Under the pieces are notes generated by a model. The model ran no database searches. It was given only the letters and a program-made list of their open reading frames with translations, and had not been told where the DNA came from. Source: Podarcis melisellensis (lineage: Eukaryota). Taken from it: a stretch of DNA of 64,000 nt. The stretch lies in assembly GCA_964234715.1 (NCBI GenBank), contig OZ174283.1. One strand, written 5' to 3'. How positions within the stretch are numbered: the stretch's first letter is position 1; each line of letters opens with the position of its first letter. Both the position numbers and the translations under genes were made by a program. Of the stretch, positions 18,926-64,000 are shown piece after piece.

Positions 18926-19408
18926 CCTTTGACCATGTGGAGATATTTCATACAGAATAGCATGTGAAGAGGGCTGTAATTCTATGCAAAAGTGATCACA
19001 ACAAGTGACGTGAGGTCACAGCTCAGTAAGGAGAACACAGTTTGCGGGCAAAAGTTCCCTGATTCAACCCCAGGCATCACCAGGCTTGTAAGTTTACACC
19101 AACCATTGTAGACAATACTTTACTTAGCTAGTTGGGTGGACAGTAGCAGATGTTGGACTTGGGAGAAGGTGTTTACCTAACCTCCAGACAGGTGAGTCAC
19201 TGTTTGTTCTGGACAGGAGGAGACGAAGGGGAGGCTGTGTGTAGGGCAGTGCAGTGCAGTGCAAAGACACTGGCAGGAGCACCAGGTTGGTTTCACTGGT
19301 TCATTTGCACCACACTGACCTATCTGCCACCTCCCCTATCCCACCCGGAAAGCAGCAGCATCTCATCTGCCAGGAGATCTGGTAAGAGTTTGAAAGAGAG
19401 CCTGAATG

Positions 19409-20084
19409 GGTATTTAAATATACCTTTCTGAAGAAACCAGAAGCCTTTCTCCTGGGCATAGTCGGCCAATTGGTGCCAAAGAGGGATAGAGCTTTCTTCA
19501 TGTATGCAACAAGAGCAGCAAGAATACTTATTGCAAAGTATTGGAAGACACAAGATCCACCCACCCTGGAAGAGTGGCAGATGAAGGTGATGGACTATAT
19601 GGAATTGGCGGAAATGACTGGCAGAATCCGAGACCTGGGAGAAGAGTTGGTGGAAGAAGATTGGAAGAAATTTAAAGACTATCTGCAGAAACACTGTAAA
19701 ATTAATGAATGTTAAAATGATGTTGGATTGAAAATAAGTGGCATTAGCAACAAAGTTAATAAGAATATGCAAAAATGAATTGATAATGGATGAAAATATA
19801 GTTATAATATGTTAAGATAAAGAGTTAAGATAAATGAAAGAGGGTAAGGATTTGCTGATTTGATTATGTAAATGGGAACACAAAAAGGGGAGGTGTGAGG
19901 AGGTCAAGGAAACAAGCTAATGAGTTTAAAGTTATAAAAAATTGATCATTAATTTTTTTCTTTTTTTTCTTATTTTTCTTATTTTTCCGTTTTTTGTATT
20001 TTTATTTTTATTTTTAATTTTTTATGGATTTTTGTATTTATGTCTTTGTAAAATCTTAATAAATATTCTATAAAAAAGAGAGAG
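19409..20084 (+). mobile_element. 5'-truncated L1 (ORF2 C-terminus, 3' UTR and tail)
   Basis: Open frame VFKYTFLKKPEAFLLG...AARILIAKYWK...EEWQMK to a stop at 19715; aataaa and A-tail; 14-bp TSD agagagcctgaatg (19395-19408 and 20085-20098). Confidence 0.92.
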
Positions 20085-20675
20085 AGAGAGCCTGAATGCT
20101 GGTGGGAGACAGCTTAGAGAGTCAGTTGGAGTGTGAGTTGGGAGTCGAGTGGTAGTTGGAAATTCACGTGATCTAGGTTAGATTACTGTGACACATTAGA
20201 TGTGGAGCTGTCACTGAAGGTGGTTTTTTAAAGTTCAGCTGGTTCAAAATTCACTGACCAGGTTGCTCACTGGGGCAAGACGGTTTGAGCATATAACACC
20301 AATCCTGGTCCGACTGCACTGGCTGCCAGCTAGTTTCCAGGTCCAATTCAAAGTGTTGGTTTTGACCTATAAACAGCTCAGGACTGCAATACCTGAAGGG
20401 CAACCTCTCCCCATATGAAACAACCCAGAGCCTGCAACAATCACCTGAAGCCCTTCTTCAAGAGGTCTGGAGGGTACCAACATGAGAATGAACCTTTTCT
20501 GCAGTGGCTCCCCACTTGTGGAATGCTCTCCTCTAGGAGCCTTATCTATCTGGTGCCTTCATTACATAGCTTTGGACCCCAGGCAAAACATTTATGTTCT
20601 CCCAGGCCTTTGGCTAATTAAACAATGTAAGGCTTTTAAAACTGTCGGAGGGGGGATTATTGCTTTTGTTTATTA

Positions 20676-21103: not shown

Positions 21104-23109
21104 ATGTTATACATTTTTGTGTTTTTATATTGTGTAATTCACCCCATGATCCCCAGATGAAATGCAATATCGAAATTCAACAAACAAACAAACAAATGTG
21201 GACAGGGAGTATTTTGATAACAGCAGTGTTGACGTAACACATTAGAGTCAGCAGTGTTATAAGTGATTATTCAATTATCCAGTAAGAACCAGTATCCAAT
21301 ACGAAAATATAAAACTGAAGCCATATGCTTCTTTATAGTAAGTGATCATAAAACCTTTCATTATTTCTGTTTCAATAAATTATTGCATCATACACATATG
21401 CCTATTGAGTGATTAAGCTAGAAGTGGCTGATGGTCAGGCACTTGGTATCTGTGGTGGCAGCAGAAACAATGGGAGTTTTAAAATACCCATCAGAAATTC
21501 AGCTCATGGTTGTACAGCTCACAGAGAGTGTGGTATTGGGGAGCTGAGGTGAATCTCTGGATAGTACCAGAAATGACATAGCTGAGCGAGTTACGGCACA
21601 GCAGTTGCATTTGGCCAATGTTGAGATACTACCCCCTGCTTTCAAGTCTTGCTGTGAAGTCCTGCCCAAAGCCCACCCAAATCTCTCTCCCCTGTCCCTT
21701 AATGAAATCTGATAAACCCCCACACCACCCCCAGAATCTTATGAAAGCACCTTCAGCCTTCCCTTGGACCTCTGCAAGAAAACCAGCAGGGTTCCTGTTT
21801 GTGGCAGTTTTATCAGATTTCATTCATTTCAGCTTTCTAATCTCCCCCCCCCACCAGCCTAAACTACCACATCATTTGGAGCATTATTTCTTGGGAATAG
21901 GTTCCCCCCGCTCCACAGTTTTGGTCTCTTGCTGGCAAATCTGCCACAGAAGCAGCAGCGAGCATTATATCAGGCTCTGTGAACCTGAGATTTTCAAGAT
22001 ATGGCAATGCAGAAGACCTACAATTGCTTGTTATTATAGAAAGATCAAAGCCCCCTCTGTTATACATAAACGCAGCAGGGTTACGTGCGCAAGATGGAGG
22101 CGAATTACAATTTCTTTGAGTTCCTTCTGGATCTGACTGTGCATAAGTCACTTTGTGAGTCAGAGGAGTCACATAAATATAACTGGGAGAGGAACAGAAG
22201 ACAGAGGGGACTCAGCTTCATTAATTAAAAACGTTAAGGTCTCTTTGCAGCGTATTATTAACATCTCCTCTGGAGCAGCTAGTGCAAAAGCAGAGATGTG
22301 ATTTGCAAGATGACTCCAGTGCTAACATTTATTATATCTAAATAGAGATCCCATGTCTGGCTCAGATATTTATGGGGCTCCAGCAGCCATGGTCAGTGAT
22401 CGTCTCATACTTGCAAATGAGTTATTCTCACAACAACCCTGTGGAGCAGAGAAACAGTATCCTTGTTTGGACAGGTGAGAAACTCCCTGTCCAGTCAAAG
22501 GTCATACAAGTTGCCAGTGACACAGAAGGCAAATGACTACAAATCTTCCTATAGCAAGCCTACATCATGCTTGCTCCATCTGTCCTTACCCATATCACTC
22601 AGAAAATTGCTACTCCTGCCCTGATGGATGTAGGTGGGTGTTCTTCTGCAGCCTTTTATAGACTGGAGGTCAGTTTCTTCCCCCTGCTGATTCCAGGTCA
22701 GCCCTGCCAGTTGGTGTGCTCAAAGAGAAAAAAGATTTTGTATTCTGTTCAGCTCTCGTCCTCCCCACCAGTTATCGCCTGGTGAGAAGAAGTTACCCCG
22801 TCTTGCTACCAAACATATGCTCATGCCCTGGAGAAGAACATAATAGTAATAATTGTGGAGACTTCTGCTGAAGTTCAGGCTAGAATTCCCATGATTGACA
22901 ACCTTTCAAGGTTTAAACTGCTACGCTGTCCTCCCATTCACCCCTGAAAGAGGCATGACAGTTGTCAAAAACACTATAAAAAAGCACAGCTGCCATTCCA
23001 AATATCCTGCCTCCAGGCCTGCAAACTTACCTCGGACAGGCAGCAGGAACATTTGCAGCAGGGATTAGATCTACAGGTGCTTGAAGAACTCAAATAACCC
23101 CTGTTTAAA

Positions 23110-36051: not shown

Positions 36052-36759
36052 TATGTCTGAGCTCCAAGCTCAGACACCAGTTTAAACTAGACTTAAGTAT
36101 GTCTTTGTAAGTGAAATACCATTTTAAGCCTGCCTGAACAAAGCTGCTGTATCTGTTACTCTTCAACAAGTATTACGAGTGAGTGAATGCTATTTTTTAT
36201 CTTTTACAAGACTGTTTGCATGATTATTGTTTTAGGGAGAAATAGCAGAAAAATCCAGTCTGCCTTAAAGCGTCCTGGATTACTAGCCTATGTAAACTTC
36301 CCTTTTAAGCTGCAAAGGGATGACACTCTGCTGAACTCACCTACGTGAGGAAGGAAGGATAATATCTAATAAATATATCCTCTCCTAGCATCTACTCACA
36401 TCCCAACACTTGCAAGCAGAGATTTTGCTGAAATGGCTCTTCCCACCTCCAAAGGTTACCACCACAAATTGGGGAGGAGAGTTTCATTTCAGCAATTTTC
36501 AAACATAGAGGCAACAACATTCTTGACTATGGCACTACCTAGCATTCCAATAGTCAGTAGCTCCCCCACCCAAGCAGGTAGAACAGGGGTGGAGGATGCT
36601 GTGGCTCTCAAAATGTTGCTAGCCTACTGGTGCCATTATCACTGACCAGTGGCAGTGCTGGCTGGGGGTGATGGGAGTTGGGGTCCAATGATATTTGCAT
36701 GGTCTCACCTCTGCCTATCTCAGGATGACATCAAAGCATCATGTAGTGTTATCCATGTC

Positions 36760-38616
36760 TTCTTTTTTTTTATAAAATTTTTATTGGGTTTTCACATTTT
36801 TTATAAACAAACACACACACAAATACAAAACAAAACATATCTAATTTCATCCCTTACTTTCTTTACCTTCTTTCCTTGACTTCCCCGCACCCCCCCTTCC
36901 CACATCCCAATTTCATTAATTAACTCAGCAAGTTATTGCCTCTCCTCTCTAATATATTATTATTATTATCTGTTCTTAAAATTTAACACTTTTTATTAGG
37001 CCCAATTTTACTTATCCAATTTTTACACGTTAGCTCCTTTCCCTAAGGTCGACCTAAATTCTCTCCCACGAATTCCTCCCTTTTTATGTTAAACAAAAAC
37101 ATATCCAAATTCATAAATCATAAATCATAAATTTTTACTATTCTACTCTCCCCCTCCCTCCCTGACCCGGTTTCTGTCCCTTCCCAACCCAATGTCCTAA
37201 AAAGACAGTTTTAGCCTGGATTTCTCACGTCTGAGGCTCTTAGGCCCCAGTTAGTCTCTCTCCGTCGGTTTTGTTGGTAGTCTTTCTTGTTGGCCTTCAA
37301 TTCTCGAAGGAGTTGTGTCACAGGCCCCCCATACTTTCCTCCCTCCAAATCAGTCAGAAGCAATTGCAGCCAAGGATCAGCCAGTCTCCCATACTCAAAC
37401 TTGAAGAAGCAGTCCCAGTCATGCTTATTTGTTCTTTTGTATTCCAATATTTCGGATATTCCAGGGGCTTCTTCCTTTGTCTTTCTCTCCTTTTGCAGTT
37501 TTATAATCCACTGGTCGTCTTCTTTATTTCCTTTGTTTCCTGAAGCTGCAGGCTTTTGGTTAATACTTTCCATCTGAACTTCCTCTCCTTCTTCTTCTTC
37601 TTTTCCCCCCATTTCCAAGGCTGTCTCTTCTGTTTCAGCTGCCAGGTTTTTTTCCACCCACTTTATGTCATCAGCAGAGTTACTCAATTTAAGGTTCAAG
37701 GTCGTAAGCTGTTTGTTCATATCCGCACTCTGCTCTTGTAAGATTCCCACGAGAAAGAACATCCTTTCTATCTCTGCCAGTAATTTTCCTTCTGCAGCCA
37801 TTGCAATATCTTTAGTTCCCTCCAGGGGGATTACCAATCCAATAGTTCTTTTCCAACAATCCGTTACTTTGTTATTCAAAATTACTTTGTTTCCAATCAG
37901 TTCAGTTTTAATGTAACACCTTTAATCCAAAAAGATATTAAGTATCACAGTTCCAGACTTTGACCGCCCGTTTGACAGCTCTTTTGACAGCTGTCAAACC
38001 TTTTGCTCTTTTTCCTCGGGCTCACACGCAGGGCGCTCCCGGGTCCAAAAAAAGGGGGGGGATTACACAAAAGCTTCTAAAATTCCTCTCTTCCTCTCCA
38101 GCACAATAACTTTTTAATCCAATTCGTGCAAGTTATCTGTCTAAACGCAAAAGTCTTTCCACCTTAGTGCTCCTCTCCTTGCTTTAAATCCTTTTGTGGG
38201 GGGGGGGGGGAGTGTGGACTTCCTTTTAACACATCCCCCGATCGTACTCCAATCAAGAATAAAACTTTAGTGCCGAAATTTCATTTTACTCACGGGTTCT
38301 TTGTTTCAGTCCAAATTTCAAGAAGAAAGACAGCGCTCTCCTGCCATGGCTCGCGGCTTCGCTCCGCTGAGGTAGCGATCTACTCTCAGCACCACGCCAC
38401 TCTCCGGTCCTCTCCGTAGCCTTTAAAAAGGCTCTTCGGGGGTCGGGGAGGGCGCTTGAGGTGCCCACCGAGTCACCAGGTCCGCAGGCTTCCGCGCCTG
38501 CGGTTTCTGAGGGTCCCCGTGTCGCCGGCACGGCAAGACCCGTCCTCAGCAGAGCCGATTCCCTCCGGAGCTCGGAGGGAATCCGCCATTAGCCGTTCGT
38601 GCTATCCCGGAAGTCC
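36760..38616 (-). mobile_element. Full-length non-autonomous L1-dependent retroposon (HAL1-like) with a single ORF
   Basis: Perfect 16-bp TSD tagtgttatccatgtc (36744-36759 and 38617-38632); 5' end ggacttccgg with a CpG-rich 5' UTR; aataaa and A-tail; no endonuclease or RT. Confidence 0.85.
37211..37801 (-). CDS. 196-aa coiled-coil/acidic protein encoded by the retroposon
   Basis: First ATG at 37801 in a strong Kozak context (gcaATGG); open to TAA at 37211; heptad-rich N-terminus and an acidic EEEEGEE tract. The ORF-track start at 37879 is TTG. Confidence 0.6.
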   Translation of the reverse strand: MAAEGKLLAEIERMFFLVGILQEQSADMNKQLTTLNLKLSNSADDIKWVEKNLAAETEETALEMGGKEEEEGEEVQMESINQKPAASGNKGNKEDDQWIIKLQKERKTKEEAPGISEILEYKRTNKHDWDCFFKFEYGRLADPWLQLLLTDLEGGKYGGPVTQLLRELKANKKDYQQNRRRETNWGLRASDVRNPG

Positions 38617-38776
38617 TAGTGTTATCCATGTCGAGTGGCTTCATTGCCTCTCTATAAACAAACTGAATGTTCTACACTACATAGCAACAGAGTTCAGTGT
38701 GACCCATTTTGTGAGTGGGAAAGCTTAATATCAGAGCCTGCTCAGCTTGGGTATGTAACTCACGTTGCCATGTACC

Positions 38777-39256
38777 TGTCAGTGACTGGGCAGAGGAGGA
38801 ATGGTGGAGACCTCCTCCTCATCCTGACCCTTTCAGGAAAGAGGAAGATGAAGACATTATAGCTTTGCAACAGGGGTTCAAGGGAGGTTGCAGCTCAGAG
38901 GCAGACGAGGGGGAAAGCTAGGAAATCATGGAAGAGCTAGAAAAACACCCAGGTGACACATTGTCATTAGAAAGCATTCCAGACCCTCCATCTCCCAGAA
39001 CCCAGTGAGCCTTAAAAGTAGGAGAGCAAAGAGCTCAAAGACAGAGGACATGTAGCAGTCCCCATAGAAGAGCTGATGAGAATGATGAATGAGGAAGTGG
39101 GAGAGACAGGGGGTGGAGATTCACTCGGGACAACACCATTATCCAAGAGGCTAGGTTCTATTGCCTCTCTCTGTAAAGATTGAAATAAAAAAGGACTGTA
39201 AGAAACCTTTCCTTGCCATTATGCTTTCCTGGGCAACCAGCCTGGAGCTGCTGACA
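38777..39256 (+). mobile_element. Solo LTR (Gypsy-like)
   Basis: tgtcag...ctgaca termini; 5-bp TSD gtacc/gtatc; aataaa near 39184. Confidence 0.8.
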
Positions 39257-48367: not shown

Positions 48368-49055
48368 TGTCAGGGTGATATGTTTATCTCCTCACTGTGA
48401 TCAACACTTCACACCTGTTGACGTTTTTATGGTCTTTATTTACAAGTATTTACAAAAGGCATCATGAGCTAATCACCATTAGTCCGAGTCCGTTGATTCA
48501 GATACCGCCAATGACTTCTGCCCCCTCCTCCAGCACCTGAAGTGGGGGAACTTTGCGACTCTTCTTTGGCCCTGCCTTTTCCCTCTCCTCCATGAGCTGA
48601 CGTAAATCTCCCTCCTGGGAGGCTGCAGGCTCACATGCCACTTCTTCCTGGTTCCCTGCATTTACAGACTCGTAACACTTCACTGCTGGGCCCTGCTCCC
48701 CCCTCCTGTGTATGGTGTAGTGGTGTAGTGGTTAAGAGCAGTAGACTCGTAATCTGGTGAACCGGGTTCACGTCTCCGCTCCTCCACATGCAGCTGCTGG
48801 GTGACCTTGGGCTAGACACACTTCTTTGAAGTCTCTCAACCCCACTCACCTCACAGAGTGTTTGTTGTGGGGGAGGAAGGGAAAGGAGAATATTAGCCAC
48901 TTTGAGGCTCCTCAGGGTAGTGATAAAGTGGGATATCATATCCAAACTCTTCTTCTTCTTCCTCTGCAGACACACATATTTCTGCTGCTTCTAGCCCTTG
49001 CCCAACGCTCTCTTCCATGTCAGGGAACTCTGAGTGTTCTGACTCTGCCCTGACA
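48368..49055 (-). mobile_element. Solo LTR (Gypsy-like) containing a SINE
   Basis: tgtcaggg / ccctgaca termini; perfect 5-bp TSD ttggt; tttatt near the left end. Confidence 0.85.
48713..48960 (+). mobile_element. Squam3-type (Ther1/MIR-derived CORE) SINE
   Basis: tggtgtagtggttaagagc A box; gctgggtgaccttgggc CORE; (ctt)n tail. Confidence 0.88.
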
Positions 49056-50428
49056 TTGGTGGCCATTGCTACATCTTGTATTATGGACCCTGACTTGGGG
49101 GAAACCATTTGCTGCTGTACCGCAGGCAGGAAAGTGTTTTGTGCAGGCAGGGCAATGAGTTTCTCAACTGCATCTTGTCCAACCATGAAGTTGTGTTACA
49201 TAGAAGGCGCAATGCTAAAGCACATTTTATCAGTGGCTGAAAGAGACACTACCTGGGCAGTTTCTTTTCAGGTGTCGCCCCCTGCCCCCAATGCACACAG
49301 CTTTTCCCACTCTTTACATGCTCTTGTGGATTTGAGCCCATACATATACATTGCTAATCTGCCCATTGAACCAATTAAGCCCTTGTTGCGCCATTGTTAT
49401 TTGTATGGAATGCACATCTGTTGCAAAATGGAATGGGTGATGCCAGAAGAATGCATAAGGCATCCACCCCACATTGGTAGCTTAACAATAAGCACTGGGA
49501 TCAATAGGCACCTTCTTCTCTCCCCTTTCTGCCTGCCCCTGTTTTCTTCAGTCCTGGCATTTAGATCGAAAAGATCACTCCCCTTGAAATTTTGCACATT
49601 AAGAGCAGTGGCTGGAGCTCAGGATGACAAATGACACCAGCCTTTGCTACCCTCTGTGCATGTATGTGTGTGGGCGCATGTACTCAGCCGCATTATGTCA
49701 TTGTACAAAATGACACGTGAAATCAATAAGCCGAGGGAAATGGCTATAAAGCTACATTTTTTAAAATCAAGGGAAAGTAAATTGCCCATGCTGCTCAGGT
49801 AGCTTTGGATTTGTTGCCTGTTTTCCTTAACAGAGATTTTCTTTCCAATAACTTAAGTCTCAAGAATTGCAGTTAGTCACTGTACACCTAAAAGTCGGAG
49901 GCATTAATCTTTATATATGTTCCCTTCCATTGCATCTTGCTTTATTTATGGAAATCATTTTGCCAAAGCAATACCATAAGCTCTACAACTTGTTTTCATG
50001 AGGAATTGAAGTTTTCAAAGAATAGCTTCCAATAAAACAAGTCATGAAACATCTTTTTTGAAAAACACCACATAAAAATTACACATATTTATCACTAGCT
50101 ATAAATATAGACTTTTCCTTTGAGTGACATTTAAACAAAAAACAAAAAACACCCGACCTCTAGTTGCTATCCAAACATTTCCTAGAACCATCTCTTAAAG
50201 AAATTAAAGAATCCATGGACCGTCCAAGCAGCTAGACAATCTACCAGTTTCAAATCAAGACTCTGTCACCTTGGGAATGAATAGTGCATTACCTTCAGCA
50301 AATGGAGCATAACTGGTTGGTCGAGGACAATTTCAAGTGCAGGAAGAGCTAAGTTCAGACTTCATGTGAGTGCATGAACTTGTGAAGGAACAAGCTGGAT
50401 TTTTCTAAAATAATCTCATGGGATAGGG

Positions 50429-62248: not shown

Positions 62249-64000
62249 TTACTTCAGACCCATTTCTTCACAAAAGTTTTCATGCCGCTGAAACCCAAGC
62301 GGTTTTGTAAAACCATCAGCTTGATTTTCATGACTGGGACAGTAATTTAATTTAACGATTCCTGCTTTTACCGTTTGACAAACATTTTGAAAGCGGATAT
62401 CCAAATGTTTTGTACGACCTTTAAACTGCCCATTTTGTGCTAACTTAAGACACGGTTGATTATCACCCCATACAGTGATTGGAGTGATGGCCTTTTCATA
62501 CATCTCTTGTGCCAAGCATTTGTAAAATTCTAGATCTCTACATAACTCAGATAAGGCACAGAACTCAGCTTCTGTTGACGACAAAGCAATCAGGTTCTGT
62601 TTCTTGGATCTCCACCCAATCAGAGAGTTACCAAATTTTATTACACAGCCAGACACTGATTTTCTATCCTTTAAATTTGCCCAATCACTATCTGCAAAAC
62701 AAGTAATCTGTGCTTGTCCTTCAGAAGATAATTCCAGGCAAAAATCTTTGGTGTATTGTAAATATCTTAACACTCTCTGAATTCCTTTCCATGCATTTAC
62801 ACTAGGTTTTGAAGCTTCTCTGCTGAGTAAGTTAACAGCGTAAGCAATATCAGGTCTACTCCATTGAGAAAGATGAAGTAAGCTTCCCAGTGCTGACTGA
62901 AAGATTTCAGCACGCTTGAATTCAGCACTATCCTTGAACTCATTGTCTTTTACAAAACCCATTTCCATTGGTGTTCTAACACCTGCACACTCTGTCATGC
63001 CAAACTTTTTCAACATTTGCAATATCTTGCCTTTTTGATTCAGTAGAAAACTGCCATTTTTGGTCCTATCTATCTGAACACCAAGATAGACCTTCACATC
63101 ACCAAGATTCTTAACTTTGAAGTGTTTATTTAACTCTTTGGCTAGTTTTTTTACTTGTTCTTGTGTCTTTGAAGTATAAATCAGGTCATCTACATAAACA
63201 AGCAAAGATTCTTGGGCATCTCCTGAACCTCTGAAATATAAGCAATTGTCAGCCTTGCTCCTGCTAAAACCAATGCCTACCAAAACGTCATTCAAACACT
63301 CATTCCAATTATGAGCAGATTGCTTGAGTCCATAAATAGATTTATGTAGTTTCCATACCTGATTTGATTTACCAACTTTCAATCCTGGCGGTAGCTCCAT
63401 ATAGAGCTCTTCAGCCAAGTCTGAATGAAGATAAGCTGTTGAGACATCAAATTGATTCACTTTGAACCCTTTCTGAGCAGCAACTGCTAATAGTGCCCGT
63501 AGGGTTTCACTCCTTGCAGTGGGTGCATAGACTTCGGAATAATGTAACTCCTTTCTTTGCGTAAAACCTCGAGCTACAAGCCTTGCTTTGTACTCTGGTT
63601 TCCCCATCGCTGTTGTCTTTATCCTGTACACCCACCTACAACTTATTGCCTTGGCACCTTCTGGCAGTTTGGTGATGGAAAACACACCCAGTTCTTTCAT
63701 AGAATTTAACTCTTTTTGCATGGCCTCACGCCACCTACTGGCCTCCTCCTGGGGTAATTGCTCAACCTCCTCAAAACTTTCAGGTTCGCAATTTGCCAAA
63801 CCAGCCCAAACACTAATAGCTTGGTACCTTTCAGGTTTACCTTTGTTGGTACGCTTGGAACGCCTTAACGGTTCCTGTGATGTTCCTTCAGTTTCCCCCT
63901 CTGACCCAGAATCACTAGTCGTCACCTGTTTGTCACTAGTAGTTGAAGAACTTTCTGATTCTGACTTTGCACGTCTCTCTTGCTGCACAGGTGAACTTTT
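62249..64000 (-). CDS. pol: Ty1/copia pol polyprotein (integrase-RT linker, RT, RNase H); partial, continues beyond the window
   Basis: Uninterrupted frame with RRSKR linker, WREAMQKE, YKARLVARG, QFDVSTAYL, LHKSIYGLKQSAHNWN, YVDD (63185-63196), RPDI, ADSDWA, SSTEAE, DNQ, KHLDIR and ADGFTK. Confidence 0.97.
   Translation of the reverse strand, partial: KSSPVQQERRAKSESESSSTTSDKQVTTSDSGSEGETEGTSQEPLRRSKRTNKGKPERYQAISVWAGLANCEPESFEEVEQLPQEEASRWREAMQKELNSMKELGVFSITKLPEGAKAISCRWVYRIKTTAMGKPEYKARLVARGFTQRKELHYSEVYAPTARSETLRALLAVAAQKGFKVNQFDVSTAYLHSDLAEELYMELPPGLKVGKSNQVWKLHKSIYGLKQSAHNWNECLNDVLVGIGFSRSKADNCLYFRGSGDAQESLLVYVDDLIYTSKTQEQVKKLAKELNKHFKVKNLGDVKVYLGVQIDRTKNGSFLLNQKGKILQMLKKFGMTECAGVRTPMEMGFVKDNEFKDSAEFKRAEIFQSALGSLLHLSQWSRPDIAYAVNLLSREASKPSVNAWKGIQRVLRYLQYTKDFCLELSSEGQAQITCFADSDWANLKDRKSVSGCVIKFGNSLIGWRSKKQNLIALSSTEAEFCALSELCRDLEFYKCLAQEMYEKAITPITVWGDNQPCLKLAQNGQFKGRTKHLDIRFQNVCQTVKAGIVKLNYCPSHENQADGFTKPLGFQRHENFCEEMGLK

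Follow-up and report, generated by a model that had tools for sequence, protein, structure and literature searches.

An orphan-protein-coding poly(A) retroposon in Podarcis melisellensis and its probable dependence on L1

Non-autonomous passengers of long interspersed elements (LINEs) are thought to be either non-coding, as are short interspersed elements (SINEs) and SVA, or to retain the ORF1 of L1, as does HAL1. A 64,000-nucleotide (nt) stretch of the Podarcis melisellensis genome (assembly GCA_964234715.1, contig OZ174283.1; this whole stretch is referred to as the window, and positions are counted from its first letter) carries on its minus strand a retroposon copy of 1857 bp (36760-38616) with a single gene, and this gene encodes a protein of 196 amino acids (aa) without detectable homology to L1 ORF1p. 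How such an element is mobilised, and what its protein may contribute, is the question that this locus raises. The explanation favoured here, with moderate confidence, is that the element is young and full-length and belongs to a high-copy, protein-coding, non-autonomous and L1-dependent poly(A) retroposon family of this lizard, the protein of which has been kept by selection and may play a role like that of ORF1p.

Structure, age and abundance of the element

The element lies between two copies of a target-site duplication (TSD), TAGTGTTATCCATGTC, one on the A-tail side (36744-36759) and one on the 5' side (38617-38632), which are identical at 16 of 16 positions. Its sense strand, 38% of which is A, starts with GGACTTCCGG and comprises a 5' untranslated region (UTR) of 815 nt (37802-38616), an open reading frame (ORF) of 196 codons (37214-37801; 37211-37801 with its TAA stop codon at 37211-37213) and an A-rich 3' UTR of 439 nt (36772-37210) in which C makes up 6%. 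The ORF start has the context GCAATGG, with G at both -3 and +4. Near the 3' end, AATAAA (36785-36780) is followed by eight bases and then by a short A-tail, A9-G-AA (36760-36771). No second ORF of at least 100 aa and no Pfam match to a reverse transcriptase (RT) or endonuclease (EN) was found on the sense strand; the element, with its one ORF and neither of these enzymes, is therefore non-autonomous.

The first 317 nt of the element (38300-38616) are CpG-rich, with a G+C content of 62% and an observed/expected CpG ratio of 0.95 compared to 0.22 for the whole window. An ETS-like motif, ACTTCCGG, is found at nt 3-10 of the element. Moreover, a near-perfect inverted repeat with 14-bp arms (93% complementary) spans nt 31-63 of the transcript (38554-38586, minus strand), and the first 100 nt have a predicted fold of -44.9 kcal/mol (z -2.2). 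Judged from its sequence, this palindrome could fold into a hairpin in the RNA or serve, within the presumed promoter, as a palindromic site to which a protein binds; it sits just 3' of a YY1-core-like ATGGCGG. The 5' UTR also carries four upstream ATGs, one of which, opening an upstream ORF of 9 codons, is in a strong context. No Rfam RNA family was found in 36400-39000 and, therefore, the element has no tRNA-, 7SL- or 5S-derived head.

The insertion history was examined by comparing the assembled contigs of four public runs, one (X1) from the organism of the window itself and three (X5, X6 and X8) from other organisms, with positions 36400-39000. X5, X6 and X8 each have a single contig (530-555 nt) in which position 36743 directly adjoins position 38617 and the 16-mer occurs once; the flanks of these contigs diverge from the window by approximately 2-3%. 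The site in these three organisms is thus empty and uninterrupted in single contigs, which shows that the TSD is not a product of chance and that the insertion is younger than the split from these relatives. The filled site was found in X1, where a contig that is identical to 36400-36769, with zero differences, reaches into the element. The nick deduced for the primed strand is ...ATGTC/GAGTG. Both flanks of the insertion (36574-36747 and 38749-39000) consist of other high-copy repeats, with depths of thousands to hundreds of thousands in the four runs, and the retroposon inserted into the short single-copy interval that separates these two repeats.

The element itself is a member of a high-copy family and not a one-off. 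In each of the four organisms, between 2,881 and 4,878 contigs per run match 36400-39000 at 80-100% likeness, and the summed word depth on the element exceeds the value for single-copy flank bins, run by run, by a factor of 60 to more than 1,000; word depth does not equal copy number, and what these values show is high repetition in all four organisms. In X1, word depth is 3,300-99,000 on the element, compared to 54 in the flank. In every run, depth falls from more than 50,000 to the single-copy level just past 38616; the 3' boundary of the element adjoins another repeat, and this sharp drop marks the 5' end. The 5'-most 350 nt are the deepest part of the element in all four runs. Within the window, no second copy was found by BLASTN or by tblastn with the family proteins. 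In organism D (X8), the middle of the ORF (37357-37704) is near single-copy depth, while the part that encodes the N-terminus (37705-37791) and the 5'-most UTR (38314-38661) are at least 1,000-fold deeper. These deeper parts are either much better conserved between subfamilies or common to another family, possibly as part of an L1 5' end.

An mRNA-like layout, with a 5' UTR, an ORF, AATAAA, an A-tail and a TSD, is also what an ordinary host gene would leave behind as a processed pseudogene or retrogene. This origin is extremely improbable, as it is already contradicted by the thousands of related contigs in four organisms; in addition, the protein has no relative in annotated proteomes and the element has its 3' UTR in common with a LINE (see below). 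The initial annotation of this DNA, which was made from the sequence alone, had described a complete retroposon with a perfect 16-bp TSD, a CpG-rich 5' UTR, an intact 196-aa ORF in a strong Kozak context, AATAAA and an A-tail, had noted that EN and RT were missing, and had proposed that it belongs to a young, non-autonomous family. All of this was borne out, its structural part at the same coordinates, its age by the empty orthologous sites in three organisms, its family status by the thousands of contigs and its lack of autonomy by the one ORF and the absence of Pfam matches to RT or EN. Three features had not been mentioned there: the four upstream ATGs, the shortness of the A-tail and a nick site other than TTTT/AA. 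The three outcomes which that annotation had set against its own proposal were not observed, i.e., the element occurs in many copies, does not derive from an annotated host gene by retrocopying, and has an ORF whose evolution is not neutral.

Relationship of the element to L1

A LINE fragment elsewhere in the window (19386-20085, plus strand) bears on the question of which machinery may mobilise the element. This fragment is 5'-truncated and consists of a 109-aa ORF, a 3' UTR of 370 nt, AATAAA, a short A-run and (GA)n; its peptide is one that we take to resemble the C-terminal region of L1 ORF2p. A weak zf-RVT lead was obtained for this peptide in Atlas, and the one relative with a name, at 73% identity, is annotated as a hypothetical protein in Podarcis lilfordi. 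In the 3' UTR of the element, the distal ~330 nt align with the LINE 3' UTR (19700-20090) at 67% column identity, and BLASTN matches 36860-36931 to 19852-19923 with 72% identity over 72 nt (E 5e-5), which bears out the G-rich motif that had initially been noted as common to the two 3' ends. Common to both 3' UTRs are a TTGCTGA-TT-ATTA block, a GGTG-G-GGA-GTCAAGGAAA block and a T-rich stretch, and the element and the LINE fragment (at ~20060-20085) have nearly the same 3' ending, AATAAA-AT-T-TATAAAAAA. The 3' UTR of the element does not fold better than shuffled sequences (z -0.2), and its LINE counterpart folds weakly better than shuffles (z -1.6).

An A-rich sense strand, a poly(A) tail, a 16-bp TSD and the likeness of the 3' UTRs are explained most economically if the element is mobilised by an L1-type ORF2p. 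Dependence of the element on L1 is therefore probable, on the indirect evidence of a poly(A)/TSD insertion, homology to an L1-like LINE 3' UTR and an A-rich sense strand.

Among known elements, borrowed LINE machinery, a LINE-like 3' end, high copy numbers and TSDs are also found in LINE-partnered SINEs, in SVA/LAVA and in tailed SINEs. These are non-coding, however, whereas the lizard family has a conserved ORF and a CpG-rich 5' UTR of 815 nt. A closer comparison is with HAL1, a non-autonomous derivative of L1 that encodes only ORF1p and that arose several times (PMC5753468). Like the lizard element, HAL1 of mammals is A-tailed, a few kb in length and equipped with one ORF in the absence of ORF2, and it is mobilised by L1, as the lizard element probably is. 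By contrast, the ORF of HAL1 encodes a recognisable L1 ORF1p, whereas the lizard protein shows no such signal and has approximately half the usual length of ORF1p.

The encoded protein and its conservation

Relatives of the protein were sought in 5.8 billion clusters by sequence and, exhaustively, in 1.84 billion representatives by profile. Ten relatives were found in the first search and about 20 clusters in total, nearly all of them full length (171-215 aa) and with 26-67% identity to the window copy. Every relative comes from raw-run (Logan) assemblies and none from an annotated proteome. Their contigs measure 0.9-1.87 kb, which fits a unit of ~1.9 kb. Two relatives look like broken fragments: P0014 is without the C-terminal motif and P0041 covers 21% of the query. 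One profile match, P0018 (1336 aa), was rejected as spurious, since its fibronectin-type repeats give rise to a series of weak matches. Neither the ORF nor any of 16 aligned family members had a meaningful Pfam match, even at E values of up to 1, and Atlas yielded no usable neighbour of the ORF protein. A profile search of the PDB, which includes structures of L1 ORF1p, yielded chance-level matches at E ~1. No family of this kind was found described in the literature, a search that had Repbase and Dfam outside its scope. By these sequence comparisons, the protein is an orphan without a catalogued family.

From its N- to its C-terminus, the protein consists of a heptad helix (residues ~2-60), a strongly acidic linker (~56-80), a middle part that is variable and a C-terminal block that is both basic and conserved and has R-N-P-G as its end. 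The heptad N-terminus, the acidic linker and the RNPG end had been pointed out initially, and all three are present in the translation and in the family alignment. Positions 7, 11, 14, 18, 21, 28, 32, 35 and 49 fall on one continuous a/d register of the heptads; these core positions are hydrophobic in 69-100% of the sequences, and in at least 94% at every position except 14. Across the 16 sequences, M1, G19, L21, Q22, A189-S190-D191 and P195-G196 are invariant and R193 is found in at least 90%, so that the family has an invariant C-terminal end, A-S-D-x-x-x-P-G-stop. The last 36 residues have a calculated isoelectric point of 10.9. Nearly all relatives keep the start M-A-A-x-G-K and the common end despite many indels in the middle of the protein, which means that these indels are all in frame. 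The pattern of depth over the ORF in X8 mirrors this pattern of conservation at the protein level. AlphaFold2 predicts a long helix for residues 2-64, with a predicted local distance difference test score (pLDDT) of 80-89 over residues 1-40; the rest of the protein was modelled with helices only, at low confidence and without beta strands, and the mean pLDDT was 48-50 in two runs. A complex prediction with two copies of residues 1-64 scored 0.02, a value obtained without controls that speaks neither for nor against self-association.

This layout recalls L1 ORF1p of type II, which consists of a coiled coil, an RRM and a C-terminal domain (CTD): both proteins are the first on their RNA, begin with a heptad helix that is followed by a basic C-terminal part, and are conserved within their families. 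The lizard protein differs from ORF1p in that it has no detectable homology to it, no predicted beta-sheet domain and a length of 196 aa. The main rival to the explanation favoured here is built on this resemblance. It holds that the element is a half-LINE, i.e., a HAL1-like derivative of an L1 lineage that lost ORF2, that its protein is an unconventional ORF1p which can no longer be recognised as such, and that its 5' UTR and ORF also occur in an autonomous parent that persists. Homology of the 3' UTR to an L1-like 3' UTR would be expected of such a derivative, as would a coiled-coil N-terminus, a linker and a basic C-terminus that mimic the ORF1p layout; moreover, the 5'-most 350 nt, being the deepest part in all four runs, may be common to other families. 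However, no signal of Transposase_22, RRM or CTD was found by Pfam in any of the 16 family members, which also agrees with the initial impression that an ORF1p RRM is missing, and the PDB search likewise gave none. Among the 1.84 billion representatives, the profile search revealed no ORF1p and no protein of more than 215 aa that is related to the family, the contigs of the relatives never exceed ~1.87 kb, and the model, at its low confidence, is without beta strands. A half-LINE origin is therefore considered somewhat doubtful.

A different concern is whether the ORF is a gene at all. The ORF could be incidental, with its conservation caused by constraint on the RNA or DNA or by the consensus-like assembly of contigs. 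A stop-free stretch of its length occurs in ~1% of composition-matched random sequences, the 5' UTR contains upstream ATGs and none of the runs listed for this stretch is recorded as RNA, all of which would be compatible with an incidental ORF. Against this, the frame is kept from the common start to the invariant end at 26-67% identity and through many indels, the heptad periodicity is conserved, codon position 1 is enriched in G and synonymous changes are in excess. Specifically, 22 differences in the ORF between the window copy and other copies, a small sample chosen by the tool as the best supported, comprise 9 synonymous and 13 non-synonymous changes; the synonymous share expected without constraint is 0.20, which gives a rough ratio of non-synonymous to synonymous change (dN/dS) of 0.37. 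The distribution of variants within clusters was too sparse for use. An incidental ORF is, on balance, highly unlikely. The frame, the ends, the heptad pattern and the synonymous excess indicate a real gene that selection maintains in the propagating lineages, and it is concluded from these alignments that the ORF has most probably been kept intact by selection even as the subfamilies diverged to 26-67% identity.

Possible mechanism and significance

Under the explanation favoured here, i.e., that of a non-autonomous family with its own selected protein, transcription would start from the CpG-rich 5' region of the element, with GGACTTCC as a candidate start, and the RNA would be polyadenylated at the AATAAA of the element. 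This RNA would then be reverse-transcribed into a staggered chromosomal break by ORF2p, supplied by an L1-type LINE with the common 3' UTR. The protein may self-associate via its N-terminal helix and its basic C-terminal part may bind its own RNA in cis, and the resulting ribonucleoprotein (RNP) would compete for L1 ORF2p. The role of the protein would thus be like that of ORF1p in function and not in ancestry.

Several observations weigh against this explanation. The nick, ...ATGTC/GAGTG, differs from the TTTT/AA that is typical of the L1 endonuclease; this lowers the probability of L1 dependence without excluding it, and TTTT/AA may not be the preference of the lizard L1 EN. The peptide of the LINE fragment has no Pfam or PDB match and, therefore, its L1 identity is not confirmed by these tools. 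The evidence for selection includes a dN/dS value from just 22 variants, and the four upstream ATGs in the 5' UTR stand between the presumed transcription start and the ORF. Most of the protein was modelled with low confidence (pLDDT below 50 for residues 56-98 and 108-170), its RNA binding and its self-association are inferences, and no run listed for this stretch is recorded as RNA.

In a further proposal of the initial annotation, the target of the protein would be L1: the coiled coil of the protein would co-assemble with L1 ORF1p trimers, which would allow it either to ride into L1 RNPs or to poison them. A conserved heptad helix and an apparent dependence on L1 are the two points in favour of such co-assembly. 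The profile search, however, revealed no sequence similarity to any ORF1p coiled coil, and a restriction factor would be self-defeating on a high-copy selfish element that needs L1. An action on ORF1p trimers is accordingly regarded as unlikely.

The C-terminal end of the protein deserves separate consideration. We know of no ORF1p that has an A-S-D-x-x-x-P-G C-terminus. The C-terminal N-P-G of the window copy and of most close relatives recalls the D(V/I)ExNPG|P of 2A/StopGo peptides. APE-type non-LTR elements are known to carry such 2A-like sequences (PMC3708506). This candidate was rejected, since S-D-V-R-N-P-G is without the D-x-E spacing, a TAA takes the place of the proline codon and distant relatives end in D-P-G or S-P-G. 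A second comparison is with the Gly-end C-degrons of human cells, for which the patterns -PG (CRL2-KLHDC10) and RxxG (CRL2-APPBP2) have been reviewed (PMC7458402). The conserved R-x-P-G-COOH fits both published patterns; these rules come from human cells, however, and the lizard tail is a pattern match, so that a Gly-end C-degron is put forward here as a lead only.

It is proposed, more tentatively than the explanation above, that an L1 parasite acquired and for a long time kept a protein of non-ORF1p origin that it needs for its own mobilisation, and that it would thus represent a distinct class among retroposons, protein-coding and yet non-autonomous. Its R-x-P-G-COOH tail may engage the Gly-end C-degron receptors of the host, either for self-limitation or for hijacking.

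Among other features of the window, an ORF of 579 aa at 62249-63988 (minus strand), which runs toward the end of the window, matches RVT_2, the Ty1/copia-type reverse transcriptase (E 8e-70). Two ORFs that start with ATG, at 21618-22136 (plus strand, 172 aa) and 49017-49634 (plus strand, 205 aa), have no Pfam match, are of low complexity and rich in Cys, Ser and Pro, and look like chance ORFs.

Since three sister taxa lack the insertion, the family also contributes structural variation of recent date among these lizards. If the explanation favoured here is true, an abundant and still active passenger with an orphan protein would indicate that cis-acting proteins other than ORF1p can serve retrotransposition of the L1 type, and the element would provide a compact natural system of 1.9 kb for the study of the minimal requirements of an ORF1-like protein.

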